NCBI GenBank assembly: GCA_977016875.1
Contig: CDRNST010000060.1
Span: 6,262,001 to 6,326,000, forward strand
Length of the DNA: 64,000 nucleotides
Origin: Pavona decussata
Lineage: Eukaryota
Direction of reading: 5' to 3'
In this document: one piece after another, positions 1 to 56,200 of the stretch
How the letters are laid out: each line of letters starts with the position of its first letter
Position numbering within the stretch: position 1 is the stretch's first letter
Notes under the pieces: model-generated
The model's input: only the letters and a program-made list of their open reading frames with translations
Told to the model about the DNA's origin: nothing
Databases searched by the model: none
Translations under genes and position numbers: made by a program

Positions 1-253
1 TTCCCTTAGGCAAGGCACTTGATCACGCCATAGTCATCTCTCGATATTCATATCAATAATTGGGTAAAATAAATTATCAGGGAAACTGACATACTACTGA
101 GGTTTAGGGAAGAACTAACTACAGTCGGGTTGAAACAAGAGAAAATAATTTTCTCTCGGCTGAAAGCAATGCTTTCTGTTTACCTTATATGATATGGAAA
201 TCAGAAGTAAGCGTGCATATTGCGTCGTAAAAATTGACTTGTTTTGTTTTCAG

Positions 254-25900: not shown

Positions 25901-28900
25901 GCTGAAGACATGGACTAGAATATTTCTAAGATAATTTAAGGGGTGAAAATTTACAAGGATGTTTCAGCTAAACGCAACCTTTTATCCCTTTTAGTTGATT
26001 GTATGTGCGACGTCCCCACAGTCGCGACGGAACTGAAAAAATCCTTGGATGAGGCTGCTGTTGTTTACACCAATAAACTGTTTTTTCTTCGAGCAACATT
26101 GCGAGACAACTGCAACACTCCTAGTGATTACAAACTTTACTGGGAGGTATGCAGATGTGACGAAGGCACTGGGATGTGTGACCCTGTAATTAAATATGGA
26201 GGTGCTTGGAAGCCAACCAAACCAAAACTGCTTTTTCCGAGACTGTTCCGTGGGACTGGCTACCTTTACATTCGATGTCTTTTCAAAACCAGTGCACAAG
26301 ACAAATTGGAAGTAAAGTCATACGGTTATGGATACCTCCGTCTTGTTTTACCACCGCTTGTACCAAGAATCATCGGCCCTTCTAGCGTGGTTAGAGGAAA
26401 TTACACCTTTGTTACGCTGGACGCTTCTGAAAGTTACGATCCCGATAGAAAGCCAATGAAAACAAAGGGAATGTCCATAAATTGGTTTTGCAAAGAAGAA
26501 AGCGATGACCACGAGGAACTGCCAAGGGCAGTGGAAGAACGTCCGGGATCGCTAGAACTTCTTCTTAATTTACAGAACTTAAAAGGAAACAGGAGTTACG
26601 TCTTCCAGCTTGTTATTCAGAAGGGAGATAGAACCGCACAAACGACTCACAAGCTTAGAGTTAACGAACCTTTTGTTTTCACTATTGGGTGAGTGGGGAA
26701 GAAATCATTGTTTTGTTTCTCAATTTTTGTTAATTCTAAATTCTCCCTATTCCATTCTCCTTAATACTTATGACGTAGACATGGCGTGCACTTGGTTTCT
26801 CTCTAGAGTTTGTCCATGCCACCCCTCTTAATTTTGTTTGTTTGTTTCTTGGTGCTGTTTTTGCTGTTTTACCGTAGTTGATGTATTTTTCAGTTTTTCA
26901 AGAAGTTGCGCCTCGCATGGGTCTTGCGTCCCGTTCGCAATGACCCAGTTGGTCTCGTTCACGTATTTTTGTATCTCTTGTTATTTTTTATTTTATCTAT
27001 GAATCTGTCAATCAATTTATTGATCTATGTTTTCATTTGTTTATTTTTCTGCTATGAACGTGTCCAATAAAGGTATTAAATACAGTACGATGGAAATTGC
27101 AAAATTGTGAAACTTTGCTCGGCGTCATTATACTTTCTTTTACTTGTTCGGCTTGTTATTCCTGCGATACACCTGAATGTTTGAATTGTTACGTAGGGTT
27201 AACCTCTTAATTCTCGTGCCCTCTTTGTACGTGTCCTGTAATATCTGCATCTTGAATAAAGTATGTATGTATGATAGTCTAATAGAGGAATGCTTGTAAC
27301 CTTTCTGCGTTTGTAGACCATTTTCAAGTTCCAATGTGGATATGCTTGTCATGGATCTTATATGGAATAACATCATTTAAAAATCGTCCCTCTGTGCGAT
27401 CTTCCATTGCAAGCTAGTATTTGCCTTTTAGTGTTGGTTCTAGCATTTCAAAATTATATATTCATTTCGCAGGTGCACCTCAAACTGTGGTTCCAAAGTA
27501 AGCGCTAACCAGCGGTTCACCTTAAAAACCTCGTGTTCAGGCCTGTTCTGCCACAAAATCTACAAATACAACTGGGTACTATTTCATCAAAAAACCTCTG
27601 GAGACAGGGACTGGGCAGAGGTACCAAACTTTGAGGAGAACATACTGACGGATATTGACAGTCCAAATTTGGTTATACCGAGCGACAAACAGATTTTGCA
27701 GGAAAGGAGTGAATATAAGATTCGAGCGGTTGTGACACTTGATAATGGATTTACGATCGCGGAGGAAATGGCGTTCGTAACCAACTCTCCTCCTCATGTT
27801 TCAGATGGGCGAAGTGGGTGCTCTGTGACTCCAAGTGAAGGGATTGTTCTTACTACGGAATTTAATATCAGTTGCTCAGGGTGGACGGACGATGATCTCC
27901 CATTAAATTATGAATTCAGGTCAGTTATACTGATGCTATTTATGGTGAACCTGTTCCAACATTGTCTCAAACAAATACACTATCACTCACTCAGTCGCTT
28001 CCTGACTCCACTTTGTCGTAACATGTGACACAAATGGTCAAATGTCTCCCCCTTCCGCCACTGTATGTTACCTATCGGTTTCTGGCGACGTGGCATTCTG
28101 GTTCGCACCAAGGACAGCTTTCGGAACGAGGCTTGACTAGAAGAATTGATACTCCACCCGGATGGTTGGAGAGAGGATTCTAGTCTACCATCCCCTATAT
28201 AACTTTCCATAAAAGCGCTTAAAACAATGTCCTCCCAATTTGAGTCATTTAATTCGAGGCTTACGACTAGCCTCAGATCCCCCAAAACCAATCGATATCG
28301 AGCCACTGTCGGTAGTAAAATTATTTTGTTGTTGTTCAGATATCAGACTGGTTCAGGAATTTTGGTGATTAACAATGGACCTCCTTCAAGTGCCATCGCC
28401 CGACTGCCTCTTGGGAACATAACAGTTGAGGTTCGAATATCGGACTCACTGGGTGCCTCTATTGTACAGCAATTTCTAGTGCAGGTAATTATATCTCAAT
28501 AAGTCTTATGTTAGCTGGGCAGAGGTTTGCTAGTTCTCTGTGTTTTGCCTGATTGAGGTCCTGTCCGTTCTTTTTCCTATTTTCTAAGCCCTCCTGAATC
28601 ACTGTGAAAAATCAGTGACANNNNNNNNNNNNNNNNNNNNNNNNNNNNNNNNNNNNNNNNNNNNNNNNNNNNNNNNNNNNNNNNNNNNNNNNNNNNNNNN
28701 NNNNNNNNNNNNNNNNNNNNNNNNNNNNNNNNNNNNNNNNNNNNNNNNNNNNNNNNNNNNNNNNNNNNNNNNNNNNNNNNNNNNTAGGTGAAGCAGATAC
28801 CTGCACACGACATTTCTCAAGTTATAAAATCGTCTGCATCAGAAGGGGACAGCCAGCTTAGCCAACTTGTCAACGGAGGAAAAGTCGACCAAGCGGCGCA

Positions 28901-31900
28901 AATGGCGTATTCTATCCTAACCGCTGTAGAGGAAGCTGATGTAGACACTAACAACAAGCGAGAGGTGTGTTTATTGTTATCTTATTTTAAGTTTTATTTT
29001 GTCAGAGTCCCTTGGGTTGCTATGTCACCACATGCAAACCAAGCAGTTTCCCTTGAGCAGCTATAACCCGAGACGCTTTGCCGGTACACCCGGAAGTAGA
29101 GCGAAGCAATGTAGAGCATGTCCAACTTAAGTGTGGTGTCAGTGTGATCAGCACTGTCTTGAATTCATCCAGGCTTGTTGTCCTTCAGAAAAGAAATTTG
29201 AGTTGCCAGGAATAAAGTGCAAAACCTCGACTGGATTTGAACCCATGACCTCTTGGCCGATTATCACTAATGCTGATTTAAGTGTAAAAACAACCCCTAA
29301 GTTTGAAAGAGTTAATTATGTTTCGAAAAATTGCCACTAGGCTCTGGATATCATTCTAGTGTTGAAAACAAAAATTAAATTTAGGTAGATGGTAAAAATA
29401 AGGATCACCCCAAATCCTCGTTCACACTGTTGAAAACACTACAATGTAGGGCAAAGTTTATTCTCTAGGGATTGACAAAAGAGGTTTCGAACCTGCTACT
29501 GTATCCATTTTATCGTGAACACTGATAAATAACTCAGGATAAGCAAAGTACTGGTAAATATTAAATTCACTGACTTATTTCATGCTTTGTTCAGTTGAAG
29601 AAAACCATACTGGAGCAGATAGCCACTGTGGAGGTCCAAAGCTTACAACAGGTCACTCAGTTGTCAGCGGTTGTTGTCATGGCAACCAAAGGAAATGAAG
29701 ACATCGCAGTGTCATCCCAGGTGTGACATATCTTCTACAACAATCATGTTTTTTCGTCTTCAGAGCAGTATTGGAAAGTTACATTGTTAAATAAGGATTT
29801 ATGCGATCGGTTTGTTCATTTCTCCTTCTAATTCGAAGTAAAACCAAATCGAACGTACCCTATTTAGTATTTTGAAGTCAGGGCTACTAACTACACTAAA
29901 GCTTAAATATCATGGTGTTTTTAATTTCCTGTTAATTTTAGAAAGATGTAGTCGGTCTTTTAGACAACATGACTGACTTCATAAGCTCTCAAGTCAGAAG
30001 CGAGGGAATGGATGTTGAGTTGGTTCAGGACGTCGGAGGGAGCCTCCTTCAAGGAATGTCTAATACGCTCAGCACTTCCGCTCCTCGAGCAGGAAAAGAT
30101 GCAGAAACAACCGATAGAAAGGACGAGGCACTGGATGGAGACGTCGAGGTAGAGAGAAAGCAGGTAAGACCACATTTGAACGAAGTCTTGGGCTGATAGC
30201 GAGTGAGGATTAACAGCTTTATTGACAACATCTAGCAAGGTCACTTCCAGAAGTTCTCAAATGTTTTAACTTGTTTCTCGCACAGAACAAACAAATCGCC
30301 AAGAAGACGCTTCATCTTATTAACCAACTAGGAACCAGTCTCCTGGCAACCAAGGTACTTGGTGAGAAACCAAGCGTATTTGCTACAGATAAGTTGTCAG
30401 TGACGATTGATCGACAGACGCCAGTCAAAATGTCCGGAAAGACGTTAGGAGGAAGAAAAGAAAGAGTCACATTACCATCTGCAGAGACCCTCTTCGGACC
30501 TGACTCTACAAAGCTGTCATCTGTGGACGCTCAGGTACGAACTCAAGCTGATATTTAAAACCATGTTTGTGGATTTCTTAGTTGCTTTCGATTTGAAGGC
30601 AGTACTTTGAGCTAAAAAAAAAAAAAAAACATGCAAAAACGTTTTAGTGCTCATTGTAAGGGTAATGTGTCTAACTTTCGCCATAAAGCCAATCTGAACG
30701 TTCAGTGGCCTTATTCCTGAAGGGCTTATAATCAGAAAAAAGTTTAATTCTGAGATTAAGGACTTAAGAATTTAGCAGCTCTGTTTTTTGGATTTTGTGA
30801 GACATATTGTAATGTTGTTCAATTGGTATTTCACTTTTATCCAAATCTTTTACGGTTGTATTTGGCATCCCTAACCTGTGTCAATCAGAAAAGCAAGAAT
30901 GCCCCGTAACGGTAATTTTCTTTGCGATTTGGTTACCCATCCGGTAGATTGCGGCATAAGTAATGTAAACTGACAGGTAACAACTGCAGATAAAAATTGA
31001 CAATGGCGTCATCATGACACCGAAACATGTTTTTTTATCGTTAGTTTTCAGTTGTATTTGCATTAGTAAATCGTCATGGATAAGTTATGTGTGAAACTGG
31101 TACCAAAGTCTGTGCGCCTAACTGTGCTCAGATACTAGGAATCGGAAAAAAAATAAAAAAAAAAATCACTTTATTTAAGTGTCAATGTATTTAGCACAGA
31201 GCACTAATTGGGGAAACTTTTCAATTGAATTGGAATTTAGAAGTGTTGGTTTTTGAGGAGAGGGGAAAACCGGAGTACCCGGGGAAAAACCTCTCGGAGT
31301 AAGGACGAGAACCAACAACAAACTCAACCCACATATGACGCCGAGTCCGGGAATCGAACCCGGGCCACATTGGTGGGAGGCGAGTGCTCTCACCACTGCG
31401 CCATCCCTGCTCCCCACAAGAAGACATAATGAAGACATAATGAATGCCACTCTTGAATTTTTAATGACAGATGACGTCTTTTAAGGAGAACCCGTACACT
31501 TGGGATGAGAGTGCCAAAGGTATCCAGTCGTCAGTGGTGGATTTTAGTTTAAAGAAAGAGGATGGAACTGCTCTTGAAGTCTCCAACCTCAAGGATCCTG
31601 TGGAATTATTCATACCTGTGACTCGACAACGCGAAAAGGGCGGAAACGCATCCGAGGAAAATTATTTTGCAAAACCAAGTAACGGCTCTAACAACCTACG
31701 ATATCACCGAATCAATATTCCGTCGGCGAATACCATCATCTTCTTTGAGATTAAGCCTGAACAGGGTGAGCTCTTGGAAATTTTTGTCAGAGCGCAAAAG
31801 AAGCCAACATCAAGTGAATACCAGTATAGAACAAGAGTTCCGGATTACTCGTCTTGTTCCGCGCACTCCAACAGCACTGGGTACCACAACTGCAGTAATA

Positions 31901-34900
31901 ACCCTTACGAGGTCACGATGTCCAGTGACATCACCGGCAAAACAGGACTTCACTATATTGGGATTATGTTTGCAGCAGACAAGAGCCCACAAACAAGTAG
32001 GCGGGTTGCTCGATCGTGTGGAGGGCACGGAGGCAGACAAAAGAGGTCTTGCATTGGCGTAAAAGATCCCCCAACCACCCCTCCCCCCACACCGATAATC
32101 GTTATTCCGCAGTATGACGAAAGTACTGACGTGAACTACACCATGTCTGTAACGGTGACGAGCTGTCTGTATTGGTCTGAGAAGAAGCAGTCATGGACTA
32201 ATGAAGGTTGCTCGGTAAGTTTTCTAAATTGCTCTTTACTATCCTGGGTCACTTGATTATCACCGGTATATCGATGGACAGGGTCAACTAGCGCTCAGAT
32301 GGCAAATTAGTCTCTTGATATTATTGAGGCGCGTCACTTCGGTCTGCTGTAACGTTTCTCTTGCGTGGCACAACAAACATAATCCAGAAGACTGTGGCCT
32401 TGAAAGTAAAAGGCCAGCGTACTTTATAAAGGCGAAATCGAAGGATATGGGAGGTCTGTATTGGGAAAAACTGTACCTGAGGTCTTGAGTACGGCCCTCG
32501 GTCGGCGGCCTCTGCCGTACTCAATACAGAGGACATAAATCACACAGCAAATCCGCCCGGGTTCGTGGACAAGATCGAAAAATTTCGCCCGCTGACGGAA
32601 CCAATCAGATTGCATGATTTACATAGTTCTGCCCGCTTGCGCACTAAGAAAAAATACAGAACGGTAACTTGGATATTACAAAGTAAGACTTACAAAGTAG
32701 AAGAGCGAAGGGCATTTCGTAAAATCAAATTGTGCCCCTATAGAGCAGCTCAAAACTTCTTATCGCTACAAGTTGCTATTGAATTTACCTGAAACAAGTT
32801 TAAACTTTTCTCTCTATACTAATGAGAAATTCAAGTAGTTCTAGCTGAGACAGAGCTGCATATGAAAGTGAAATGTTTCTACTTACTATTTTGTGATTTT
32901 AGATCGGACCTAAAACGAGATCTGGAAGTCTGCACTGTCTCTGTACACACCTCTCTGCATTTGGTGGGGATTTCTTTGTAGCGCCAAATCCAATCGATTT
33001 TGACAAAGTCTGGGAACAGTTTGGCAAACTGGGGGAAACTGGAAACTTCGTCGTGCTAGCGACCGTATGCTCTATATTTGGTGTATACGTCTTGGGACTG
33101 GTTCTCGCACGAAGAGTGGACAAGCTTGATGAACTGAAGGTGAAAAATTGGTTTTAATATTGCTACCTTATTAAGCAAGAGAGCATGTAATTAGTGTTTA
33201 CCAATAGGTAACAAAGCAGCTTTAATGTTGAGAGAATTTTTCATGACTGTACTAGTAATCTTGCCTAGGTTTATTGTAGTTTGAAGTCTGTCAGAAGTCG
33301 AGGAAGGAAGAAGTTGAATGACCTTGGCTACATATACCAGAAACCAGATGTCCAGAGCACATAGCTGCCTTGATAACCTGGTTTCATCATACGGGATGAC
33401 ATGGCCGGTCTAACGAAGCTGCGCTTGGTGTATCATTACTTCCATGCTTGTAGAACTGGCTCTGTAAAGGAGCATGTGTGAAGGGTTAGTGTGGCTACGG
33501 TACAGGGACCCGGTTCGCAGCCATAACAGCCTATGCTGCAAGATCTTGTACAGACAAGGGATTCATCGCTGGACTGAGATGGTGCTGCCATGTTTTTTGA
33601 AAGTATCAACGTTGTCCAGCTGTGTGCCATCGATTATTATCATGCAATCTATGGCGATGCTAGGTTAAGTTACCACATTGAACTAAAGTCATTAAAACAG
33701 CTTCAGATAAAATCGTTTGGGTTTTCAACCCTGTTCTGGGGATAATCTCACCCTGGATGTGAAGAGTCACATCCTGGGAATTGGGGCTAATTTTAAATAG
33801 GACAGTTGCCTAAACTCCATGAGGAAATCTGCCTTGTAACCCGACGTTTAGTTATAATACAGTTTACGACAGCAGTGTTCATGCTTTTCCCCCAGGACTT
33901 TGCACTGATGAAACCAGTTAATATTGTAAGAACAGAGTTATCAAAGAGGCTCGATTGATTCAGGTGTTTGCTTAATTCTCACCAGGTGGTAGGAAATGTG
34001 TACTTAAGTGATAATGATCACTCGACTGGGTGCGTCTACAAATTGCACGTGCAGAGTGGAATGTGGAAAAATCAAGGAACAACAGCGCATGTGGGAATTA
34101 CGTTATACGGTGAGGATGCCTGCAGTGGTCCAATCTCACTGTCAGATTCAAGCTCCCGAAGGATATTATTCGCTCGTGGTAGCGTGAATAGCTTTATCCT
34201 TTCATTACCCTACTCACTTGGCCGGCTGTTCAAGATACGTATCTGGCATGACAACAGTGGCGAAAGTCCAGCTTGGTTCTTACAACAAGTTGAGACAGAA
34301 GATTGTAGCACCGGAAACATTGGACACTTCATTGCCAACCGGTGGCTTGCACTTGAGAAAGGCTCTGGGAAAATCGAGTTTGAAATCAATGCTGCGGGAA
34401 AGAAGGAGCTTGCGAAGTTTAAGAATTTGTTTGTGTTTAGAACCGCGAGAAGCCTGGGTGATGGGCATTTGTGGCTTTCTGTGTTTACCAGGCCACCTCA
34501 TGTGTCATTCACTCGGTGCCAGCGGTTATCGTGTTGTCTATCAGTCTTGTTCACTGCCATGGTAACCAACTGCATGTTTTACAACTTCGGTGCAGCACCA
34601 CAAGACTCATTTCAAGTCGGGCCTTTGAAACTGAGCTGGACTCAAATTAAAATCGGTATCCAGAGCAGCCTGATCGCAATTCCGATTAACGTGTTGGTGG
34701 TGATGATCTTCAGAAACGCCAAGCAAAAATCACAGGAGAACGTGTACAAAGTAAGTGTAGAAGAAACTGAAGAGAAAGCACCGGGGTGCCTGCCGCACTT
34801 CTTTATTTACATCGGCTGGGCATTGTGTATTTTGACATCGCTAACTGCTGCAGCCTTCACAGTATTCTACAGCATGATGTGGGGTAAGGAAACATCGAAC

Positions 34901-37900
34901 CAATGGCTTACGTCAATTACGGTGTCATTTATCCAGGATGTCTTTGTCTCTCAGCCAATCAAAGTCATTTTCCTAGCTTCTTTGCTGTCACTCATTATCA
35001 AGAAGCCACCAGAACGTGAAAAAGTTTACGGTATGTCTTTTAAAAAGGAGGATCAGTCTAGTCAGACAGTCACTGGACCACCAGAGGGCGACGAACTTGA
35101 GAAAGCAAGGGACTTCAGGGCTAAAGTTCAAGACATGTACAAGGTTTTTGCTGAAGTCACAATTTTCTTGATTTTCGTGTTACTGTTGATGATCGTTTGT
35201 TATGCAAATCGAGGATCTACGCGTTATATGCTGACAAACTCGATGGAAGACGCCTTTAAAGACTTTAAGGTGAGCTTAAGATTAAGAGTTTCTTGTTATA
35301 TCAGCTGATGATAATTGCTTTTAATAAGTACGTAAATTATGATAATCCGGGTGAGTGTAGTCGTAAGCAGGACTATTTGAGGTGACATTGACTGACGTTT
35401 CATCTTTAGAGTCAAGTAAATTGTGGAACGTCAGTAGATGGTATAATTGTCTCTTGTTGTTCACTTGATTGGTCAAAAAGGCGAGATGTTATTGGTCTTT
35501 TGTCAGGTTCAAATCATTCATATCATTATTGCTATTGTTTTGCATTTATAAGATCGCAAAAATATTCATGAAAAAACTTCATGAAACTTGATCTGACAAA
35601 GTTGGGAAAACATACTGTTGTTCTTTTAACTCAATATTGGAAGGTGTGGAGATGTGAAATTTGTTTAAGCTAACTCAAGTTTACTATGCAAAGGAATTGA
35701 AGTTGAAGACGAATATTAAATCGTGGTTGCTGAAGTAATCTGTTTAAAAAGTTTAAGTCGTTTAAAAAAAATCGGCTGCGCCTCGTTTTTTCAACCTACT
35801 TCTCAGTGTTTGGATATCTGATGAAACACTCTTCCTCGTGTCTGATATATGACATGAAGTTATCAAACTTAATAATTAAAATGTTTATGTTAATTAGTTT
35901 CTCTTTTGTCAATAACATTCATGTTGTTGAATATTAGCCTGCGAAAAGCAGACGCTCTCCCATGACTTACACAGCTGAAAAACTCCATATGGCTGGCATG
36001 CATATTTGATTGAATTGCGCCTCTTATTGGTCGTAAACTGCTTTTCATTTGCTATAAACAGTCGTGGGTTATAACTGCAGAATAGGGGTTGCACCACCTC
36101 ATTGCTATATCCACGCTTCATTGGGGTGATGTACTGGCCTTATAAACTTAGATCCTGACTGGTGTTTTCTTTATTCAAGCAAAGAAACATTTCCTCCTCA
36201 TTTTGGAAATGGACGAGGGGTCGCCTTTTGCCAGCCCTGTATGATACCAGGTGGTACAATGGCTGGATTTTTGACTACGAAGAAGGATTCGTGGGCAACA
36301 GAGAACTGTTTATGGTTGGCATGCCTCGCCTCCGACAAATTAGAGTGAAATCAGGTAAGCTTCAAAAGATGTTACACCAAAGTACCATTACATTTATATA
36401 GCGCGACGAAAAAGAAAACATCATCGCGGTTTTTTTTTCATATTTCACTGAGAAAATGTCGTGATTTAATGTGTTTGTCCATCAGAGACCATGAGATTGA
36501 TCCCTTCGGGAACGTTCCCTTTTTATAGGAAGGTGAGAAGGGATAGGTGATGGTGGTGGTAGAATTTGTCTATACAGTGAAATGTACTCGGTGTTCTCAG
36601 AATGTCATTTTTCTCTAATGTCAACCCCATCTCCAACTCTCAGAGAATAAAGGAAAAGAAATGTTGGATTACACTTCACATCTAATTAAGAGAGTTTTTT
36701 CGTTCACGTCGTGGTGATTGTTAGAAAACCCGTCGGACCATCAGGCTCCTCTTTTTTCTTTTTCTTTTCCTCAATTTATTTTCTTCGCATACCCTCCTCC
36801 TCCTCCTCAAATTTCACCACCCCACCCCTCTTCGTAAGTCATCTGCAAATTTCCGAGTATGCCTGTGTCATTTTCTGATTAATACATCATTCTCATTTAT
36901 TCACCAGGCTTAACATATTCTATCACATTATTTCCATTGCGCATATGCTCAGTGGTAGAGCATCCGAACTAGTAATCGGAAGGTCTTAGGTTCGATTCCT
37001 GATAGGAGCACTTGGATTTTTTTTCAGAATATGCCCGTGTCATTTACCGATTAATACATCATTCTCAAATATAATATACTTTGAAAAAATATTGGTGGAT
37101 ACTGGTACCTTGGTCTATTGTGATCATTGCAAAGAATACGTACAAACAGTATGACTGTCACAAGTGCTGGGTGTAAGATATCGCTTGCCATGTTTTGTTT
37201 CAATCACAAAAGTGGGCAATAAATAATCACTTTTTCTTTTTTTTTGCAGTTAACAACTGTCAAGTATTCGAGAAAGTATCTCAACTGGGAGAAAAGTTCA
37301 GCAGGTGTGTTCCTCTCTATTCTTCAAAACACGAATACAAAACTTCCTTTAATTTGCCAAAGTGGATTCCAGTCACAAATATGAGCGTGTTTCAATCAGT
37401 CTTTGAACTGGAGAAGATGTGTCCCAAACCCTGGAGATATCGTTCGTCTTCGGAGCTACAGACATTATCGTTTCAAGGCGTTTATAGCACGTACGATGGA
37501 GGAGGGTTTGTGGCTGATTTGGGATACAATGTAAAGTCTGCCTTAAACGTATTGAACAAGCTAGAGGCAAACAACTGGATCGATGAGTTCTCGGTGGCTG
37601 TTTTTATAGAATATACGGTGTTTAATCCTTCAAGCTCGTTATTCAGTGTAGCAAAATGCCTTTATGAGCGATTCCCGACCGGTGGGGTGGCCTTTTCAAG
37701 AAGCGTTAAAACACTGACTTTGTACAAGTCATCGAGCAACAACTTTCAAAAGTTTTACGAGGTCTGTCAACTGCTATTTATGGTTATCATTTTAATTCTC
37801 GTTGTGAATGAGGTTTCCAAGATTTATCGCCAACGAAAGAAGTACTTTACTGGTTTTTGGAATTGGATGGAGCTCGTTCAAATCGTTACAGCTGTGTGTG

Positions 37901-38907
37901 CCGTTGTCATGTTTTTCTTGAAAGCTAAATACACGAGTTTATTCGTGAAGAGGGTTAGGAACAACCCCTTTGAGACGTCAAGTGCTGATTACATTGTCCT
38001 CTGGTCAAGCGTTGAGATTTATGTGTTATCATTTCTCATATTCATAGTAACCATGAAGTTCCTTCGCCTCATACGGTTCAACCGCCATGTTTGTCAGATG
38101 ATGGGAACACTCGCAAGAGCGGCCAATCCGCTCATTTCATTTTTCTTCGTTTTTGTAGCAGCAGTCTTAGCCTACACTCAGATGGCGTTTCTCCTGTTTG
38201 GTTCGACTTTGGATCCATATTCCTCTTTTTTCGACTCGTTGCGTGCATTGTTACAGATGCTCTTAGGAGGAAACATGTTTTTCTATAAGTTAAAATCAAC
38301 GGACGGGTTATTGGGTCCTTTGTTTGTGTTTTCTTACATGTTTACAATGATGATGATCTTGATAAATACGTTTATTGCCATTTTGAACGAGTCTTACACA
38401 GAGGTTGTAGAATTGCCAGAGAACGACTTCACCAACGCTGATTTGGGATCATTTATAGCAGTTTACCTGAGCAGGAATCTGAAGATTTTGGGAAAACGGT
38501 TTGCGTCATTACTGAAAAGGCCATTTAAAGATATAAACTCTAAAATGAAACGGAAAAACAAAAGGTGGAATAAAAAGGAATGCAAAGAAGCAACGGAAAT
38601 CGATAGATTATTTTCTAATGAAGTCGAGAAGGGGAGAGGCATTACGACAGTTTGTCCAATTGCATCACTGGAGTCTCTTGAAGAAATTGATGAAATGCCC
38701 GACGAGAACGATGATGAAAATAATTTAGTCACATTTGCAGACTCTGGCAATGTCTCCCTGTCTGTGCTCTCTATAGACGAGCTGTACGAGGCAAAGGAAG
38801 ATGATGAAGTCACAGGGTTGCTACAGGAAGTCAAAGAGGTTGCTGGCTCTATGGAATTCATTCTAGGCGTCACCCCGTTGCGGCCAATAAAGGAATCTAT
38901 TGTTTAA
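16831..38907 (+). CDS. Polycystin-1-like (PKD1L2/REJ-like) protein, gene B, complete, about 2350 aa: SP, F5/8C, SEA-like, REJ, GAIN/GPS, TM1, PLAT, TM2-5, TOP, channel domain
   Basis: Coding exons 16831-16921, 20679-21016, 22693-22834, 23519-23628, 24748-24806, 25483-25637, 25995-26688, 27473-27919, 28340-28484, 28788-28964, 29595-29720, 29942-30163, 30286-30534, 31471-32214, 32903-33139, 33986-35269, 36180-36354, 37250-38907. All GT-AG with compatible phases; total 7053 nt; colinear with gene C. Confidence 0.9.
20679..22834 (+). CDS. Gene B F5/8 type C (discoidin) domain, two exons (20679-21016, 22693-22834)
   Basis: CSKSLGISDNRIRDNQMSAES...VITGIATQGYG...FIGNFD...ALRMELYGC, hallmark FA58C motifs. 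Confidence 0.88.
21221..21990. mobile_element. Non-autonomous TIR DNA transposon with TTAA target sites (Kolobok-like)
   Basis: TTAA|GGTGGCTGAACACAGTTT ... AAACTGTATTCGGCCACC|TTAA; purine-purine termini. Confidence 0.8.
21995..22548 (+). mobile_element. Kolobok-like non-autonomous element with long imperfect TIRs and a THAP-domain relic
   Basis: TTAA|AGTGCCTATGAAGCGAAAATTG ... CAATTTTCGCTTCATAGGCACT|TTAA; inverted similarity extends about 140 bp; internal MAEEKKNKRQRGLYCVAGVRNKESCQN* from 22188 resembles a THAP N-terminus. Confidence 0.8.
23080..23310. mobile_element. Penelope-like terminal-repeat fragment, inverted pair, same family
   Basis: GGGGTTAGTT...GTGCTGACCGGTTTCG followed by CGAAACGTCAGCACTGGAATCTCTTTACGGTGGCCAAATTA. 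Confidence 0.65.
23519..25637 (+). CDS. Gene B SEA-like domain, three exons (23519-23628, 24748-24806, 25483-25637)
   Basis: FVAWITISNSRFTLAYADNRSEAYLALEKEI...PGFLYADLRTFS resembles SEA domains (MUC1 GGFLGLSNIKFR|PGSVVV), with a phase-2 intron at the matching position. Confidence 0.65.
24344..24648. mobile_element. Small non-autonomous element with a subterminal inverted repeat and terminal palindrome, apparently nested in another repeat
   Basis: TAGCATACCTCAGTGA (24344) is inverted at TCACTGAGGTATGTTA (24517); palindrome AACAATTAGACGGC...GCCGTCTAATTGTT at 24534-24644. Confidence 0.65.
25180..25345 (-). mobile_element. LINE (CR1/L2-type) ORF2 C-terminal fragment
   Basis: Minus strand reads CRTKIKQLTILHQGPKTWNSLP, a typical ORF2 C-terminal motif. 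Confidence 0.7.
25995..28484 (+). CDS. Gene B REJ module (exons 25995-26688, 27473-27919, 28340-28484)
   Basis: VTLDASESYDPD, CTSNC, GCSVTPSEGIVLTTEFNISCSGWTDDDLPLNYEF and LPLG motifs typical of REJ domains. Confidence 0.85.
28621..28784. other. Assembly gap (164 N) inside a gene B intron
   Basis: Run of N ending 3 nt before the exon at 28788. Confidence 0.99.
31147..31415 (-). mobile_element. tRNA-derived SINE, apparently full length
   Basis: Minus strand has A box TGGCGCAGTGG and B box GGTTCGATTCC at the 5' end, a GGGTACTCCGGTTTTCCCC core and a T-rich tail. Confidence 0.88.
31471..33139 (+). CDS. Gene B GAIN-B/GPS and TM1 (exons 31471-32214, 32903-33139)
   Basis: CLYWSEKKQSWTNEGC...HCLCTHL|SAFGG GPS consensus followed by a hydrophobic TM1. 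Confidence 0.9.
32445..32655. repeat. Degenerate palindrome-bearing interspersed repeat
   Basis: TTGAGTACGGC...GCCGTACTCAA hairpin plus CCAATCAGATTGCA motif. Confidence 0.5.
33986..35269 (+). CDS. Gene B PLAT plus TM2-TM6 exon
   Basis: ORF 33968-35308; IRIWHDNSGESPAWF; homologous to 254-1519. Confidence 0.93.
35340..35500 (-). mobile_element. Second Penelope-like terminal fragment with a deleted hammerhead core
   Basis: Minus strand GACTCTAAAGATGAAACGTCAGTC...GACTACACTCACCCGGA. Confidence 0.45.
36850..37066 (+). mobile_element. Same tRNA-Thr-derived repeat family, permuted copy
   Basis: GCTCAGTGGTAGAGCATCCGAACTAGTAATCGGAAGGTCTTAGGTTCGATTCCTGATAGGAG, with the ...TATGCC.GTGTCATTT...TTAATACATCATTCTC segment on both sides. 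Confidence 0.8.
37250..38907 (+). CDS. Gene B terminal exon: TOP domain, polycystin channel TMs, acidic C-tail
   Basis: ORF 37195-38907; YDGGGFVADLG, KFLRLIRFN, INTFIAILNESY. Confidence 0.93.
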
Positions 38908-47200: not shown

Positions 47201-50200
47201 TTTAAATCGCCAAGTTTAGGCCGTTTACCGTTTCTTTTTTTAATTGCAGACATTGTCGATATAAGAATGTGAGGTCAATTTTACGTTTGTAGTAATTTTT
47301 TAGACTTGTTTCCATAGTTTAGTTCTAGCTTATGATGTTTTTCATTTCCATTCAAATATTGTTGACGCATCGAGGGTCGGTAAATGCGCACTAAGAAGCT
47401 TTATTATTTGTATGAAAATGTTACCAAATAGATTCAAGGGCATAGGAAACACTATTGAAAATGTCTTAATAAATTTATCCTTGCTCACTTTTACGGTGTA
47501 TTAACTCACGTCCGTTTTTTTTTTCAAAGAATTTTACTGGCAATAACGACAGCAATGGGGTGCAACACCATGATGTTCCACTTCCTGTTTTGACGTCAGC
47601 TGTTATGTTGAGACCGCTGGAATGGAACAACAATGTGGGCCTGCGAATGGAGCTGTATGGATGTGACTCTGGTATGTGAACTGTGGTGTGATGGATAAAT
47701 AAATTAAGACATTTATTAACTGCACTCATAGAACGAAATGTTCAATGACGTTAATAAAGGCAACCCAAGTCCTATAAGTCCTAATAAATTTTTGAAGGTG
47801 TTATTAAGTATTTAAGAAAAACTCCGCTCACTGCATTGATGTATTCGAGTACATTTTTATTCTATAGATGATATGCTTGGTGATGTCTACTTAATTTTTC
47901 GAACGTGACATTCATAGTCTCCTGTCTCGATGTCTGATAAAAAAAAAATGCAACAATGTATTTGAATTTTTTTTTAAAGTTCGGTACCTCAAGGAAAATA
48001 CTATTTAAAGAAGGAGATTGGGTAAGATCACAAGGAGGACAAATCGGTGGCGCAGTATTGCCTGCAACTTTTTTAGATTGCGCTTTGCGTCGGCTCGAGT
48101 TTAAAAACTGTTGTCTGCAACGTTACGAAGTTGAACAACACAATACTCGTGCGTTGAGAAGTTGACGCATGCTATAGTTTTTGCACATGAGCCTTTAGAA
48201 TTTTTACATATCCTTCGAGATGGCTGTTGGTTGAAATGATTCATGTATTTATTGTTCATTATTCAATGCTTAGCTGTTCCTATCCACAGGTTACTTTTTC
48301 TTGGCCAAATTCATAATTTCTCAGGAGCATGCGCTGTTCACCTTGTCATTTCTGGATAAAGAAAACAAAGAATCTCGAGCTTGGGCAGTTGACACTATAA
48401 GTGAGGTGAGAAAAAGGTTCAAATCCCATTGAAAAGGCTTGATTTCTATAGCAAAAAGTAGTTATTAGTTAAGAAGACCCCTTTCTGTCTCTCGTGAGGT
48501 ATGTATTTAATTTTACAAACAACTGACGCTCGGGATGTTTAGGATAATAGCTTCACCTGTTGATATAGGGGCACTCACAAACAAGCGGTCCTTATTGTAA
48601 AACGTTTACTGAGGGGTGCTTATGAGGGGAAGAACCCAAGGAAAGAGAGGTTCTTATAAGACTGGGTCCACTATTTGGAGGAGGTCGCTAGCTGCAATTC
48701 TGCCAAACAATTTTAGATTGTTAAAAGAGCGGGTAACTTTATCCAGTGGATAAATCGGTCGGTGTCCAGCGAGTAAAATGTACTCCAGCAAATACACTGA
48801 CACTTTATTTACTGGATCAAATTACCCAGTCTTTGAACAACTGGAGCTAGGGATCTTTTTAACTTTGTTACATTCTGAACACCGATATCCCTTTCTTTTG
48901 CAGATTAAGCATATCGTCCAATATATCCCAGGCTTTCTTAAGGTCAAATTTCGACGTTTCCGGTACGTAAAACAGCAAAATTTTCCCTATTAAATTTAAC
49001 ATTCTTGCTAACGAATGGTACAGTGCACTAACACGGAGTGAAGATATATGACTAGTTCACTTGCCGATTGAGTTCCGATGGCTTCATAGTGCTTTTCAAT
49101 TTGTCTTAGGGAATGATCTATCTTTTGTAAGTGTTCCTCAAGATATAACATTAATAAGTTGACAAGGTTACCTAAAATGCTATGATCGACGCATAATTCA
49201 AACAACGTGAAAATACTTAGGAACTGCGAGCTCCGCACTTCCCGGTGGTATGCACGATATTAAAAATGTATCTTTCAATATCTTTTAAAGAATGCACTAA
49301 CATACTGTTTTTCGTATTTTGTGTTAGACTGAGTACTGATTTGGGGCCACCATTGGTATCTGCTGAAGTTGAGATGCATTGCATCAGGGAAGCTGCCCAC
49401 TTCATTGCGGACTTTTTGGCTAAATCTATTGGGCCTGAGAAAAGCATGTTTGCGTCAAAGATTGCTTACGTTCTTCCTGGTAAGTGAGATAAAACTAATG
49501 TTTCAGTGTCCAGTTATTTGGATTTGGACACTCAAAAGGGGAAAAGTAAGAGATAACACGGAAATAGCTTTGGTAAGGTGTTTTTCTCATTACGTCAGTT
49601 CCTGAATGCCTTCTGGGTTCTCAGCATCCTCTTTGAGGGAAATGGAAATACTTTTAATTAGACGTTTTAAGAATACTTAGGAAAAGAGAGAGAATCGAGT
49701 GGTTCTAGACGTTTAAAATAAAAAAGGAAACAAACAAAGAACAAAACAGGAAAAAAAATCAACAATCTAACCAAAAACAAACGAAAAAATTATTTGCCTT
49801 CTGTTTGCAGTGAACTCCAGTTGTCCTTTTCCAGAAGTTGCCATCAACCTTAACGAAACCATAACTACAGCTACCGAGGTGTTAACGACATCAACATTGA
49901 CCCTCCGTGCAAGCATAACTTTCTGCAAGTCACCTATCAAGATGATAAAATCTTCGTTATGGGAGTTCATGATTATCGACAAATCCTCTGTGATGCCTGC
50001 ATTTCTAATAATCCGTAATCGCACTGAACATGTGCTGGACCCTCGGTTTTGCACGGATTGTTACCCTGTTTACATGCTGGTACGGTTTACAGTCAGATTA
50101 AAGCATCTCGAAGGAAACACTCTAGAGAGCGTCGGAATTCTGAAAATCAGCCAACCAGCTCTAGTGGCGAAGATAAGAGGCCCAAGGGAGCAAACCAAAG

Positions 50201-53200
50201 GCATCGGTGCCGAAATCGTATTAGATGCTAGTGATTCGCACGATCCCGATAACCGCAGCGAGGGGACTTTGCATTTTACCTGGTTATGCAAGCAGAAGGA
50301 CGCTGAAACAGTTTTTAAGGGAAAATGTCTTTACGGAAGGACAGAGGAGAACGGGAAGCTGTTAATTGTAAATGTAAACAGGCTGAAGTCCAGACACTAC
50401 TATGATTTCAAGCTGATTGTGTCAAAACGAAAACGGACAACTTCTGTGATTCATGAATTAAAAGTTCATCCTTCAGTTCATTTCACTTTCAGGTAAACAA
50501 GAAATAACTTCTCTTTTTGAAGCGACAGTTGAGAAAGGGACGATAAATTCAATTCAGAGCGGAGTTTTAGACACTATTAGTCAACTCATTTAAGGAACTG
50601 ACTGGGATGAGATTGAAAGCCTTAAAATATTTTTAGGTGGTTCTACAGTTTAAAATGAGGTTTTGCGGTTAAAGAGTTGTTTTATATGTGCCCTTCTTCC
50701 TGAGTTATATTAAGTTGGAAAGGGTTAAAAAAGAGATGGGACCTATAGGTGTTTTATTTTCGTTTCTGTTTATGAACGTTTATTCTCCAGTGGGGTAGTG
50801 ACAGGGCTTATTTTAATGCTAGGGAAATAAGTTATGGAGGTAATTGAGTTTAAAATTGGCAGGAGGGAGACTAAACAGAATATTTCTGGGATATTTTTAC
50901 CTGCAGGTGTAATGGAAATTGCGGGGAAAAAGTTGTTCAGTCCAAACGCATGAGACTTATCCCCGAATGTGACGGAAAACTTTGCAGTGACGTCAAGACG
51001 ACTACATGGAGTATTCACGCGCACGAGGGATCTGGTGAAATAAAAATTGCACACAAGAAACTTCCCGGGCTGAGTTCACCACCAAGCCGTTTTGTTATAC
51101 ATAGTCTCAACTCGCACAGTACTAGTACCAAGACAAGAGATCCCATGTATACACTAAAAGCATTAATTGAAATTCAAGTGCAAAAGGATGTCATTGAGGA
51201 AGACTATAGCCAGGAAATTCGCCTTAACTCTGTGCCTTTCACGACAGGTGACAACAGCAACTGTTTTGTTCAACCATATGAAGGTTATGCCGTTGAAACT
51301 ACTTTTAACATCACTTGTGTGGGCTGGCAAGACGAAGACAAACCATTAAAATATGAATTTCGTTATAACACCATCGCAGGCTTAGTGATAAACAATCCAA
51401 AGAAGGGAGCTGGATTTAACACCTTGTTGACAAAACTTCCAATTGGGGATAGATTTCAAAATTTCCAATTTCCAGTCGATATATACATCAAGGATGCGCT
51501 TGGAGATTTTGCTTTCAAAAGGATTAACGTTAAGGTAGGAATAGTTGATTACATTTTACATTCTCTCACCATTGATATTAGCTTTTCTGGATAAATTGGT
51601 GTCAAATTAAAATTGAAGGCGACGTGGCGTGACTGTAGTAGGTGGTTGACTCGTCAGACCTTCAGTGAGATCACTATTCGTTGTAAGCCACTCTCCGCTT
51701 AGAGTTGTTGAACTGCACAGCAGTTAACAAAATTTGCTTCAACGCTAGCTGACTTGTTAATAAAAACTTGACAAAGTAATGAATGTAACCACTTGGAGTA
51801 ATAAGAAACCCTCTAGACTTAATATTATTAAAGAAGCTGTGCTATACGTTTTCTGCAGTACGGTCTCACAGAGATGGGGCCATAATGAAGGCAGGCGTCA
51901 ATCTTATATATTGTTTCGTATTTATTTCACGCTTCTCTCGTGTTTTTAGGTGAAGGACAAGTACTCTGCAGATATCAACAAAACAGTGTACAGGATTGCC
52001 AACAACCAGCGAAACAAAATCAACGTTTTTGTAGAGGAGAAAAAATACGCCGAGGCGTGTGACTTGGCTATCTCTGTTCTTTCCCTTGTGGAGCAAAGAA
52101 AACGACCAGGCCAGACAGAGGTTAGTATTTACAAGATCATCTCCAAAATTCAATCTAGTATAGTTGATGTGTTTACCGAACATAATACGTGTAAGAAGGA
52201 TTCGGGCTTATATTGCGTGCTACACTTTTGCCATTTGACAAAGTTGAAGTTTTCTTTGAGGTTCTGGAAATCCTCCTGAGAACTTCCTGGATGGCTTCCG
52301 TTTTGAGTTACCAATGAATGGCAAGAACGACTAAAAAGGCCTTGTTATTTATAACGTCCGTGCTTTCGACTCAAGTCCAAATAATTTTACACTTTAACAA
52401 TCCAAGAAGCACTTAAAAATAATTAAAGAATTGTCATGCACAGACGTCGGTCACGTGAAAAATACGTATAAGTTTTTCTCGATTTTTTTCGATTCTCTTC
52501 CTTCCTTTGTACCTTTCCTTTCTACCTGAGAGCCTAATTACCTACCTTCCTCCTTTGGTTCATTCCTCTCTCAATCCTTCCCACCCTTTCTTCCTTCATT
52601 GTTCTTTCCTATTTAATCAGAGAACAAACAGCAACAAAGAGCCTCATTCGAACCTGTATGTGCATTAGATTTAAACCTTATTGCCTAGATAACTGTTTCT
52701 TGTTTTCTTGCTTTCAGGAAGGAAATGGAAAGGAGAAACTTAAAATTTCAAAGGATGAAGCTAGAAGGGTCAGGATATTTGAAATTGGTATTTCATGCTG
52801 ATGAATTTTCTTTTTCACGAATCTTACCTTATTTCCTTTTACATAATGAGCTTGTTTGATATTCCCAGATAAAAAACAACATCATCAAACAAATGGTAAC
52901 TGTGAAAATTAACAGTAAGGAGCTTATATCAAAAGTGAGCACGGTTATAGCCATGGCAACCACAGAGAAGGACGAAATATCTCAGGAATCGCAGGTAAAC
53001 GTTTTTAATGCTTTAAGAAAATCGTGGTACTAGTTAAGAATGATAGCTGCTTTCTCAGTTTGTTTTTTGCAGTAATCAGCCAGTTATCACACCATTCATT
53101 GCAAGACTTTCCAAATCATTGCTACTTTCTACCAGCCTCAAAATGTGACAAGTAACAGCTGTGTTTAGCCTCCCGTCTAATAAAGACTTGCCTTTAGAGG

Positions 53201-56200
53201 GCACATACTTTAATGAGCCAAACAAACTTCCTTCAAATTTTTAAGATTCTGGTGAGCGCTGAAGTACACAATAACAATAAAAAAAAGTGGGAAGCCTCTG
53301 TTTAAAGGAGGCCAAATAAGGCCGTTTCTTTTGTGTCCTAAGAATGAAATATAATGATTCCTTTCATCTGATAATAAATCATATAAGAAGAAATATCAAC
53401 GCCTTATTTTTCACATACACTGCGTGTGACGAGCTGCGGCCTGAAATCTAACTGTATACCTTACCTTACCTTACAGTAGCTAATTTCCACACATTCTAGG
53501 TATCGATATCGTTTGCCAGGATAATGCTAATTGTTTTTCAACATCTTATGACAACCAAGAAAACGAATTGAATGTTCACATTTAATGTTCACATCTTCGC
53601 CCGACATCCCCCTAATTTAATATAATGTCATTTTGAATGTAGGAGAAAGCTTTGCGGCTACTGGATGAAGCAACAGAGTTTCTCTCCAAACTTATAGCTA
53701 ACAGCACTGAAGACACGGACACCCTGACAAAAGATGTCAGTAAGAATATACTGCTTGGCCTGGGAAATATTCTTAGGATCTCTTCGGAGGACGCTAGCAT
53801 TCTTTTGGGGCAGACAAACAATTTTAAGAAAAAGGTACTACAAATACTAAAGGCTACTTAATACTCCTGATGTGCATGCTGTTACTTTTTTGGAGGAATT
53901 CGTGCAGCGATTTCAAACTTATTACTAGAATCATATACATAATTTACTACCACATCAACGCTTGACAGAAAATTTCATTTTTGATTCTTTAATTTCCAAC
54001 AAGTCAGACGGCTTAGTATTGGCGTTAACGAAATCCTGAATTTATTTTGGTTTAAACTACTTCGCAGTAAGATCCCATATTTCTGTGCAAATATTGAAAA
54101 AAAGAAATATCACCCATAATTTTATTTATTTATTGCAGGGCCCCACTGAAAACCACTCTCAGTGGCGTGGGCTTCCTGTTGAATATCTTCATTTTAGAAC
54201 GTCCTGTTAAAGTGCTTCCATTACAACGGTCAAACTTAAAAATTCATCCACAAATTAAAAGCATGCATGTACTGCGCATAGTACACAGGACCTCAGTGAA
54301 GAAATACTTATAAGCTTTAATTTCAATGACACGCTAGATCCATCTCATGCAGTAGAATAGACAGTAATATTCGACTCTGAGAAAGAAAGGATTAATAACG
54401 TGTACGTTTTTAAAAGGAATTTGAAAAAAAACAACAACAACAACAACAAAAAAAAAAAACCAAACAAAACAAAACAAAAGCAAAAACAAAAACTTGCACT
54501 CCACTCGATTTCATTGTATTAATTCATTTTCCATTGTTATATGTATGTATATAGTGGTTTCTGCAAGACGATATTATGCAACATCTCCAGTCCTTCGAAT
54601 TGTTATCTTCTTTTAATTCTGTAAGTCAAACTGTAATGTTGTTCCCCAAAACACTGTGGACATAAAATTCAAGATACCCGTGCAAATAGAGAACGACGTT
54701 TTTCGTTTATAAAACATGTCTCGACATTTTCAAATACCATCGTTAGTTCCGAGGAGTACAGTAAAACTCTGCTTATATATCTGAGAGAGTGAACTAACAT
54801 TAAATACTTATGTGAGAATACAATGTGTAACTTAATAACTGATAGATTTGCCGCCTCGATGGTGTCTCCCTCTCATGCAGGCCTTGACTGGCTCATGTTG
54901 AGATGGCGGTGAATAAAGAAAATTCACATACACCCTTCTATATGAATTATTAAATTTCAGGAAAGGCTGCGGACGAATCTTGTGATCAAATTTCTTTTCA
55001 CCAATGCCTGTTCATTAACTTATCGAGACGTTGAAATCATGGAATAAATATATTATACAGTATATTAGCCGTCGAATTACGCCAGTTCTGATATTGGCTA
55101 TAAAAGTTATTGTCGTTATAATTATAACCCTTTTCTATCCTTCCAGAGCAAAGAAATTGCCCAAACAGCGCTCAAAACGATATGGAAACTTCGAGACTCT
55201 ATCGTTGTCAACAAGGCTGACGATGAGCCCGTGGTCATCACCAGTGATTTTTTATCCATGGTTCTGTTCAGGCAGACTAATATCAAAACGATTAAAGTTG
55301 ACAAAACCTCCTTCACCTTACCGTCATATGGAAGCCTGTTCAGTGAACTTGGAATAAACGAAACTGATACCACTACCAAGGTCGTTTTATTCAAGAACAA
55401 TCCTTACACGTGGCACAAGAGTGCATCAAGAGGTAAAAGTTTTAACTGCTGATGCCTAAAGAGGTGCAGAGTCAACTTTTGTTCTTTCCTTTCAAAGTGG
55501 TGAAGAAATATGTTAAAAATATCCCTTAACTGTTTTGCAATAGTCCCTGTTTTCCAAGTTTTGATTGCGCAAGGGTTTGCATAAGTAATCAAGTAATCAA
55601 GGCCCGGTCTCGACGACAAACCTCTTATGCAGCTTACCTCATGAATTTTAATGACATTATTTTATAATTAAAATAATGATAATAATGTTGTTTAATATCT
55701 CTGGTACACAAATTAACATGTGTAAATATTATCAAATGTGCTGTACAATGATGATGGTGATTAAAATAAGTAACGTCACTGAGATTAATGTGATAACAGC
55801 TGGCAATGGCATTCTCGGATGAGCAACGTATGACAGTTGTCTTTACTTATTATAATCAAATTCTGTCTTTACTTCTTAGTTAGGTCATGGGTAATCGACG
55901 TGGTGCTACAAAAAGAAGACAAAACAAACTTGAACATCTCTGGACTAAAAGAACCAGTTCAACTGTATATTCCCCAGCATCCTGGTGATCGTGCTTCACC
56001 TGGTGCTGTCAGGAGGAACACCGATCAATACTTTGTCAAACCAAGCTATGACCTAAACGACACCTCTCTCATACAGTATCATAAAATAAACCTTACTCAC
56101 GATCGAGATGTAGTGTTTGTCCAACTAGTCCCCGAAATATCGACGTTTACACCACTACGCGTTTATGTGAGCTATTCAGATCTCCCTACGCCCATTTTTT

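Follow-up and report, generated by a model that had tools for sequence, protein, structure and literature searches.

The window described here is the whole stretch of 64 kb (38.6% G+C) analysed from the coral Pavona decussata (contig CDRNST010000060.1, positions 6,262,001 to 6,326,000). It hosts three tandem PKD1-like genes, referred to as A, B and C, all located on the + strand. Genes B and C both encode a cassette fitting the pattern R-x-x-R↓S-C-x5-R-x-K-R↓S-C, followed by K-D/S-P-P and a Pro/Thr-rich linker, in which arrows mark the bonds putatively cut by furin-type proprotein convertases. The cassette is found in the GAIN domain, upstream of the GPS (G-protein-coupled receptor proteolysis site), and is the subject of this report.

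Pfam domains were searched exon by exon on the stop-free segments of genes A-C. PLAT (PF01477), Polycystin_dom (PF20519) and PKD_channel (PF08016) were matched in all three genes. REJ (PF02010) was matched twice in gene B (E 1e-18 and 2e-26) and twice in gene C (E 1e-15 and 4e-17). The window genes are PKD1-like, in that they feature REJ, GAIN/GPS, PLAT after the first membrane span, and a Polycystin domain with a PKD channel. The coordinates of all features are given in Table 1, and refer to the window.

The cassette in genes B and C

Translation of 31702-32214 (+) in gene B yields ...S-R-R-V-A-R-S-C-G-G-H-G-G-R-Q-K-R-S-C-I-G-V-K-D-P-P-T-T-P-P-P-T-P..., and translation of 56101-56616 (+) in gene C yields ...A-R-I-K-R-S-C-G-D-G-S-R-R-K-K-R-S-C-V-G-V-K-S-P-P-L-P-P-T-S-T-S.... 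The two peptides, their twin R-x-x-R sites, the Ser-Cys ends and the 11-residue spacing had been noticed in an earlier sequence-only reading, and are reproduced exactly. The span that this reading assigned to gene B (31999-32094) holds; the one assigned to gene C (56401-56484) is slightly short at both ends, and becomes 56398-56493. The cysteines following the first and the second site are called here C1 and C2. Two further cysteines, Ca and Cb, had been spotted upstream in the same exon; they are real, and at least 90% conserved. The cassette had been placed just upstream of the GPS, which in gene B amounts to a distance from the second scissile bond of 39 residues to the first GPS cysteine (that of C-L-Y-W), and of 73 residues to the H-L↓S bond.

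Public runs in which this DNA is found carry the label of a single organism or of coral metatranscriptomes. RNA-type contigs of the source organism start at 31468/31470 and span the gene B motif. Splicing of the cassette exon to the GPS exon, with 32214 joined to 32903, is seen in one contig at a depth of about 5, and is thinly supported. Contigs from the coral metatranscriptome runs X9 and X10 were discarded as evidence of expression, as they contain the intron and are about 5% divergent; they represent DNA, pre-mRNA or a related coral. The diverged copy found in these runs alters only variable cassette positions (32008-32009 and 32027-32028). The changes replace Ala with Ile two residues into the C-terminal end of site 1, at position P2, and His with Arg in the tract, and every site Arg and every Cys are kept.

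Table 1. Features of the window, with coordinates counted from its first nucleotide
Feature	Coordinates	Strand	Remarks
Gene A, partial PKD1-like copy	164-5043	+	Pfam
Gene B, PKD1-like (PKD1L2/REJ-like) receptor-channel	25940..38904	+	Approximate extent of recognisable exons; REJ, PLAT, Polycystin_dom, PKD_channel
N run (assembly gap or masked)	28621-28784		Within the window
Gene B exon with most of GAIN subdomain B, including the cassette	31468..32214	+	RNA-type contigs; about 30 paralogous exons in the genome
Conserved Cys Ca (D-Y-S-S-C), gene B, upstream of the cassette	31855..31857	+	In 147/162 aligned sequences
Conserved Cys Cb (H-N-C-S), gene B, upstream of the cassette	31891..31893	+	In 146/162 aligned sequences
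Gene B site 1, R-R-V-A-R	31999..32013	+	Minimal R-x-x-R; most paralogues R-x-[KR]-R
Gene B 11-residue tract, S-C1-G-G-H-G-G-R-Q-K-R	32014..32046	+	Site 2, R-Q-K-R, at 32035-32046
Gene B S-C2-I-G-V-K-D-P-P and Pro/Thr-rich linker	32047..32094	+	
Gene B C-L-Y-W...W...G-C, first half of GPS motif	32164..32211	+	Aligns to adhesion-GPCR C-x-F-W...G-C
Gene B intron between cassette exon and GPS exon	32215..32902	+	GT..AG ends; skipped in one contig of run X1
Gene B GPS autoproteolysis motif, C-L-C-T-H-L↓S	32936..32956	+	In the next exon after the cassette
Gene C, second PKD1-like gene	49771..61843	+	Approximate extent; REJ, PLAT, Polycystin_dom, PKD_channel
Gene C site 1, A-R-I-K-R	56398..56412	+	Translation
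Gene C 11-residue tract, S-C1-G-D-G-S-R-R-K-K-R	56413..56445	+	Translation; site 2, R-K-K-R
Gene C S-C2-V-G-V-K-S-P-P and Pro-rich linker	56446..56493	+	Translation
Gene C GPS motif, C-L-C-N-H-L↓S	57261..57281	+	Translation

Conservation and residue preferences of the cassette

A six-frame search of the P. decussata genome with the cassette exon gave 37 matches, 30 of which have been fetched as loci. One of these (L002) is the corresponding exon of gene A, located just upstream of the window. Copies of the exon are organized in tandem arrays on several contigs. The cassette is found in about 28 of the 30 aligned paralogous exons, the identity of which to the gene B exon goes down to 31-35%. 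These 28 or so exons fit the consensus R-x-[KR]-R-x-C, 4-6 residues, R-x-[KR]-R-x-C-[VI]-x-x-K-[DE]-P-P. Positions are numbered hereafter as P4 to P1 before the scissile bond, and as P1' and P2' after it. Only 29 of the 162 well-populated columns of the paralogous exons are at least 80% identical, and these include both P4/P1 Arg pairs, both cysteines, the Lys at P2 of site 2 and K-x-P-P. Alignments of the paralogous exons bear out the earlier remark that the flanks diverge much more than the motif. The conserved Arg positions use all six Arg codons, of both the CGN and AGR families, in 23 paralogues. This denotes selection on the amino acid, rather than sequence left over from gene conversion or recent duplication.

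The GAIN-B exon counts at least 37 copies, mostly in tandem, which denote a large expansion of PKD1L2/REJ-like receptor genes. The copies are located on contigs C60 (6.18-6.47 Mb), C6 (0.63-1.01 Mb), C214 (4.07-4.22 Mb), C198, C126, C8 and C65.

A HMMER scan of 1.84 billion representatives gave 245 matches, mostly single-exon open reading frames from assemblies, and the strict twin motif is present in many of them. Named full-length homologues were obtained by word-indexed searches. The two basic sites and the Cys pair are found in every retrieved named anthozoan homologue with a detected GPS, and the GPS autoproteolysis motif seen in gene B recurs in all named homologues in which a GPS was detected. 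The cassette is carried by Stylophora, Montipora, Oculina, Acropora, Desmophyllum, Nematostella, Actinia and the octocoral Dendronephthya, and the motif is found also in Actinostola. The alignment of cnidarian PKD1-like proteins, which had been proposed as a check of the motif, thus finds it conserved across anthozoan homologues. Being found in corals, anemones and an octocoral, the insertion is at least as old as Anthozoa. In an alignment of 81 GAIN sequences only 18 columns are at least 90% invariant, and the P4 Arg, the P1 Arg and the Cys of both sites are among them (R399, R402, C404, R410, R413 and C415 in the numbering of the model described below). Two gene models of Actinostola sp. (P0069 and P0176) lack the GPS exon, PLAT following directly on the cassette region or on C-L-Y-W...G-C. 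This is probably an annotation error, and the Stylophora homologue P0177 was modelled in their place.

A clade of PKD-repeat proteins of about 3000 residues has the cassette in a variant form, in which site 1 is a few residues farther from C1 and the anchor following the second site reads C-V-[IL]-I-P-P-P-P-P-K-P. More distant intermediates without C1, or without the paired sites, retain a single R-x-[KR]-R beside C2, as well as the P-P anchor. Weak leads from a protein atlas place single-Cys intermediates in flatworms, rotifers and molluscs; they are leads only. No insertion was found in two fish PKD1L2, one amphioxus PKD1L3 and about 10 distant representatives, the set on which absence outside Anthozoa rests. 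In the insertion-free sequences a short loop or hairpin joins the 'Y-Y-I-G-I' strand to the 'N-Y-T-x-x-V' strand. A homologue search made with P0212 toward bilaterian PKD1 returned only cnidarians.

Residues have been counted position by position in 148 sequences featuring C2 for site 2, and in 128 sequences featuring C1 for site 1. At site 2, P4 is Arg in 118 sequences and Lys in 9, P3 is free (Q, E, K, R, S, V or M), P2 is Lys in 102 and Arg in 26, P1 is Arg in 119 and Lys in none, and P1' is Ser in 101. At site 1, P4 is Arg in 100 and Lys in 2, P2 is Arg in 67 and Lys in 28, P1 is Arg in 100 and Lys in 4, and P1' is S, D, A or G. The established specificity of furin-type convertases is for Arg at P1 and P4 and Lys or Arg at P2, with a free P3. 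This position-specific asymmetry points to convertase specificity, and not to a generic charge patch. The R-x-[K/R]-R pattern of predicted furin-type substrates is found family-wide; site 1 of gene B is only a minimal R-x-x-R. Downstream of C2 the residues fit the anchor C2-[VI]-x-[VFY]-K-[DE]-P-P, with [VI] in 140, Lys in 138 and P-P in 121-139 of the 148 sequences. C1 and C2 are 9-11 residues apart in 119 of 125 sequences, corresponding to a tract of 10-12 residues, and the twin arrangement with constant spacing is found in 86 of the 125 sequences having both cysteines. Gly abounds inside the tract, where conservation is otherwise poor except at the site 2 residues.

The likeness to furin sites might have arisen by chance, from a basic low-complexity linker that recent duplication has spread. 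The genes are indeed tandem duplicates, as this explanation would have it. Against it, paralogous exons are as little as 31-35% identical, conservation reaches sea anemones and an octocoral, and all six Arg codons are in use. Strict R-x-[KR]-R motifs are also few, 3.1 per homologue of about 2300 residues (1.35 per 1000 residues, in 37 named full-length proteins), and the twin pair would be most of them where both sites are strict. Cross-species conservation, residue preferences and codon use effectively refute an explanation of this type, and a chance origin of the twin motif is excluded.

Location of the cassette in the GAIN fold

An AlphaFold2 model was obtained for residues 190-706 of the Stylophora homologue P0177, from an alignment of 81 rows. 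The fold is hence judged on a homologue, and not on a window gene. The model has a mean predicted local distance difference test score (pLDDT) of 86.8 and a predicted template modelling score of 0.81, and matches GAIN crystal structures with a Foldseek probability of 1.0. VIA Z is 21.7 for Gpr126 (6v55), 20.8 for latrophilin-1 (4dlq) and 19.7 for ADGRB2 (8oek). These alignments run as far as the GPS residues, that to 8oek up to chain residue 913. In this model the PKD1-type GAIN-B has about six strands more than its counterpart in aGPCRs (adhesion G-protein-coupled receptors).

Residues 386-441 or so of the model, which include C1 (404) and C2 (415), have no secondary structure and a pLDDT of about 54-56, and confidence recovers from about residue 425 in the Pro/Thr linker. 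The loop is located between strands 376-385 and 442-452, the second of which directly enters C-L-Y-W. In the polycystin-1-family receptors of anthozoans, then, a single beta-hairpin loop of GAIN subdomain B holds an insertion of about 45-60 residues, the cassette, which is shared across the family. Since the site is found between REJ and GPS, the topology makes it extracellular. A GAIN model had been proposed to see whether the motif is an exposed loop: the GAIN fold is confident, and the cassette is a low-pLDDT coil, a proxy for exposure only.

The loop has a putative counterpart in aGPCRs. In ADGRB2, flap 1 corresponds to residues 848-856, 56-64 residues before the GPS+1 residue S912, and flaps affect both autoproteolysis and the exposure of the stalk (PMC13062082). 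Flap 1 and the coral loop occupy the same position, before the strand entering C-x-[FY]-W, by arithmetic on the published numbering and not by superposition. In a profile search of PDB sequences the alignment was confined to the GPS motif. The flaps of aGPCRs are short and poorly conserved, whereas the coral loop is long and highly conserved.

Additional features of the model and of the GPS region have been noted. Model residues 278-452, taken alone, resemble the beta-sandwiches of GOLD domains and of SIDT1/2 ectodomains, with a borderline Z of about 8. Model residues 489-499 (P0177 678-688), which form the stalk after H-L↓S, have a pLDDT below 50 and are not the usual last GAIN strand; the reason may be either that the alignment is thin in this region or that the stalk is loosely held. 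Most paralogues have Tyr as the aromatic residue of C-x-[FY]-W (C-L-Y-W, 32164-32175 in gene B). The Phe found at this place in latrophilin-1 is reported to orient the catalytic His, and the slow-cleaving variants include F803Y (PMC13062082). GPS autoproteolysis may be slow in the coral family, because Tyr replaces Phe.

The presence of Ca, Cb, C1 and C2 was scored in 162 sequences, and found to be CCCC in 121, CC-C in 17, CC-- in 4, --CC in 1 and C--C in 3. Joint presence and absence slightly favour Ca-Cb and C1-C2 pairing, but are ambiguous. A ShK-like toxin domain, suggested by R-S-C-I..., was considered and rejected, as no further Cys is found after C2.

Putative cleavage of the cassette and alternative roles

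Residue preferences, conservation and predicted exposure make cleavage of one or both sites by a furin-type convertase fairly likely, and clearly more probable than any of the alternatives. Cleavage would produce a nicked yet assembled GAIN domain, and prime shedding or alter the lid over the stalk. Candidate enzymes are encoded by the coral itself, since 22 matches to the convertase P-domain PF01483 over the cut-off were found in its genome. The proprotein-convertase reading of the twin sites, as originally put forward, is strongly supported in silico by position-specific residues, about 10 anthozoan genera, a flexible coil and convertase genes. The cut would fall most probably at the stronger second site, R-x-K-R↓S-C2, in the late secretory pathway. 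The nicked GAIN domain would stay together via its beta-sheet, and possibly via a C1-C2 disulfide. If C1 and C2 are paired, a cut at site 2 alone would leave the chains tethered; a cut at site 1 would sever them, with the tract hanging on C2. Convertase cuts and GPS autoproteolysis would together yield up to four pieces, namely a large REJ-bearing N-terminal fragment, the tract of 10-12 residues, a 73-residue 'GPS cap' made of the linker and the strands with the GPS-motif cysteines, and the stalk with the membrane-spanning channel part. The nick would prime shedding of the ectodomain, or loosen the lid over the stalk, by analogy with the furin cuts of Notch S1 and of the GPR126 SEA domain. The ectodomain of a coral REJ-domain protein has been found in the skeleton proteome, and its shedding attributed to the GPS (PMC4890752). 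Shedding of such receptors therefore occurs in vivo.

Several points weigh against cleavage. Low pLDDT is a proxy for exposure, and not a measurement. Both sites have a Cys at P2', which is unusual in a furin substrate, and this Cys could hinder docking if disulfide-bonded. A C1-C2 ring would be tight, counting only 9-11 residues and having its scissile bond two residues ahead of C2. C1 is lost and C2 kept in 17 of 162 sequences, which does not fit a simple C1-C2 tether. Two paralogous loci, L028 (C60:6372310-6372840) and L030 (C198:743710-744228), have lost both sites and C1, and keep C2, the K-x-P-P anchor and an open frame. They may be natural 'uncleavable' variants or young pseudogenes; since the frame is open in the absence of both sites, the convertase sites appear dispensable.

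The P2' Cys and the tight ring, which may disfavour proteases, also speak for a cassette that is not cut at all. It would then be a disulfide-stapled basic loop, either binding an anionic partner, such as sulfated glycans from egg jelly, from mucus or from the skeletal matrix, or stapling the Pro/Thr linker to the domain. REJ-family proteins are known as glycan receptors. The two cysteines at a near-fixed spacing of 9-11 residues and the strongly conserved C2-[VI]-x-[VFY]-K-[DE]-P-P anchor fit this explanation as well. A charge patch should however allow Lys/Arg swaps everywhere, and at site 2 Arg prevails over Lys 119 to 0 at P1 and 118 to 9 at P4; only P2 alternates between Lys and Arg, and P3 is free. 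The sites moreover persist in lineages lacking C1, which indicates that they can do without the ring but not without the site. An uncleaved loop is for these reasons disfavoured, and we regard it as possible but rather unlikely. If uncut, the cassette would still be an unexplained element, as strongly conserved as the GPS cysteines.

The constant spacing of the twin sites in 86 of 125 sequences, and the flexible, Gly-rich tract between them, recall the alpha and gamma subunits of the epithelial sodium channel (ENaC), an unrelated protein in which two convertase sites are similarly located around a short tract. The tracts of ENaC are longer, and have no Cys. Dual convertase cuts can free an inhibitory tract in ENaC (PMC13488063). 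By analogy, and close to what the earlier reading proposed, both coral sites would be cut in a regulated way, and the 10-12 residues in between would act as an inhibitory tract, or as a tethered or released ligand, the receptor-channel being activated by their removal or by disulfide reduction. A specific ligand or inhibitor would not be expected to have so poorly conserved an interior, a single site is left in many lineages, and a Cys within the tract suggests attachment, not release. A role of this type is accordingly improbable, more so than that of an uncleaved loop.

A furin-type cut in the GAIN domain, which we favour, may be compared to known processing events. GPS autoproteolysis of polycystin-1 and aGPCRs takes place in the same domain, the coral genes keep C-x-C-x-H-L↓S/T, and, as proposed for the convertase cut, a cut inside a folded beta-sandwich leaves the fragments associated. 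Autoproteolysis is however self-catalysed at H-L↓S/T, whereas cutting of the cassette would need an external convertase, acting 73 residues upstream on a loop missing from the three chordate sequences retrieved. In MET, integrin alpha chains and several AB toxins a convertase site is found between two cysteines, and the chains remain linked after the cut. Known disulfide-bracketed furin loops are larger, of 14 or more residues, and the likeness would hold for site 2 on condition that C1 pairs with C2. A disulfide tether is reported also for fibrocystin (PKHD1), which belongs to another protein family and has no GAIN domain. The ectodomain of this cystic-disease ciliary receptor is cut by a proprotein convertase (PMC6992733). 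The furin site of GPR126/ADGRG6 and the S1 site of Notch are located in an exposed loop of a folded domain, the halves of which stay joined until separated by force or ligand (PMC6954182). GPR126/ADGRG6 is, as predicted for the coral receptors, a GAIN-bearing receptor with a second, furin-type cut in the ectodomain. The GPR126 and Notch S1 sites are single, have no bracketing Cys and belong to SEA or SEA-like domains; the coral sites are inside GAIN, and doubled.

Because convertase-cut receptor loops are common, the cassette is not a new principle. It is set apart by its place inside the GAIN domain, by its doubling, and by a conservation on par with that of the GPS cysteines. Full-text literature searches found no paper linking furin or convertases with the GAIN domain of the polycystin family, and a review of polycystin-1 processing mentions neither. 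This agrees with the earlier reading, which knew of no description of such a switch in the GAIN domains of the PKD1 family.

A broader proposal is tentative, and on present evidence unlikely. Dual furin-type cuts in the loop equivalent to flap 1 would unlatch the lid over the stalk (the tethered agonist), or free the REJ ectodomain. GAIN opening would then be gated by convertases, in an anthozoan, possibly spiralian, protease-dependent route of activation or shedding, parallel to the GPS and lost in chordates. Exposure of the tethered agonist of GAIN domains and shedding of the polycystin-1 ectodomain are open questions in the fields of aGPCRs and polycystic kidney disease. If true, a convertase cassette in a beta-sandwich beside the GPS would be a natural example of enzyme-controlled GAIN opening, and would help explain how REJ/PKD1-type ectodomains of corals arrive in the skeletal matrix. 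The cassette is in addition a cheap sequence marker for a large expanded family of coral receptors.

Two minor elements are located near the gene B exons. A stop-free segment at 20663-21154 (+), upstream of the REJ exons of gene B, has a sub-threshold match to the F5/8 type C (discoidin) domain. It is probably an N-terminal exon of gene B, because PF00754 is found at the N-terminus of many homologues. A tRNA-like element was detected at 31339-31410 (-), within 31300-31433, in the intron upstream of the gene B cassette exon, with an Rfam score of 26.3 against a threshold of 29 bits. Contig depth in the RNA runs is about 5e5 at this element, versus about 20 on the exon, with many loose ends into unrelated sequence. 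The element is probably a tRNA-derived short interspersed element abundant in the coral.

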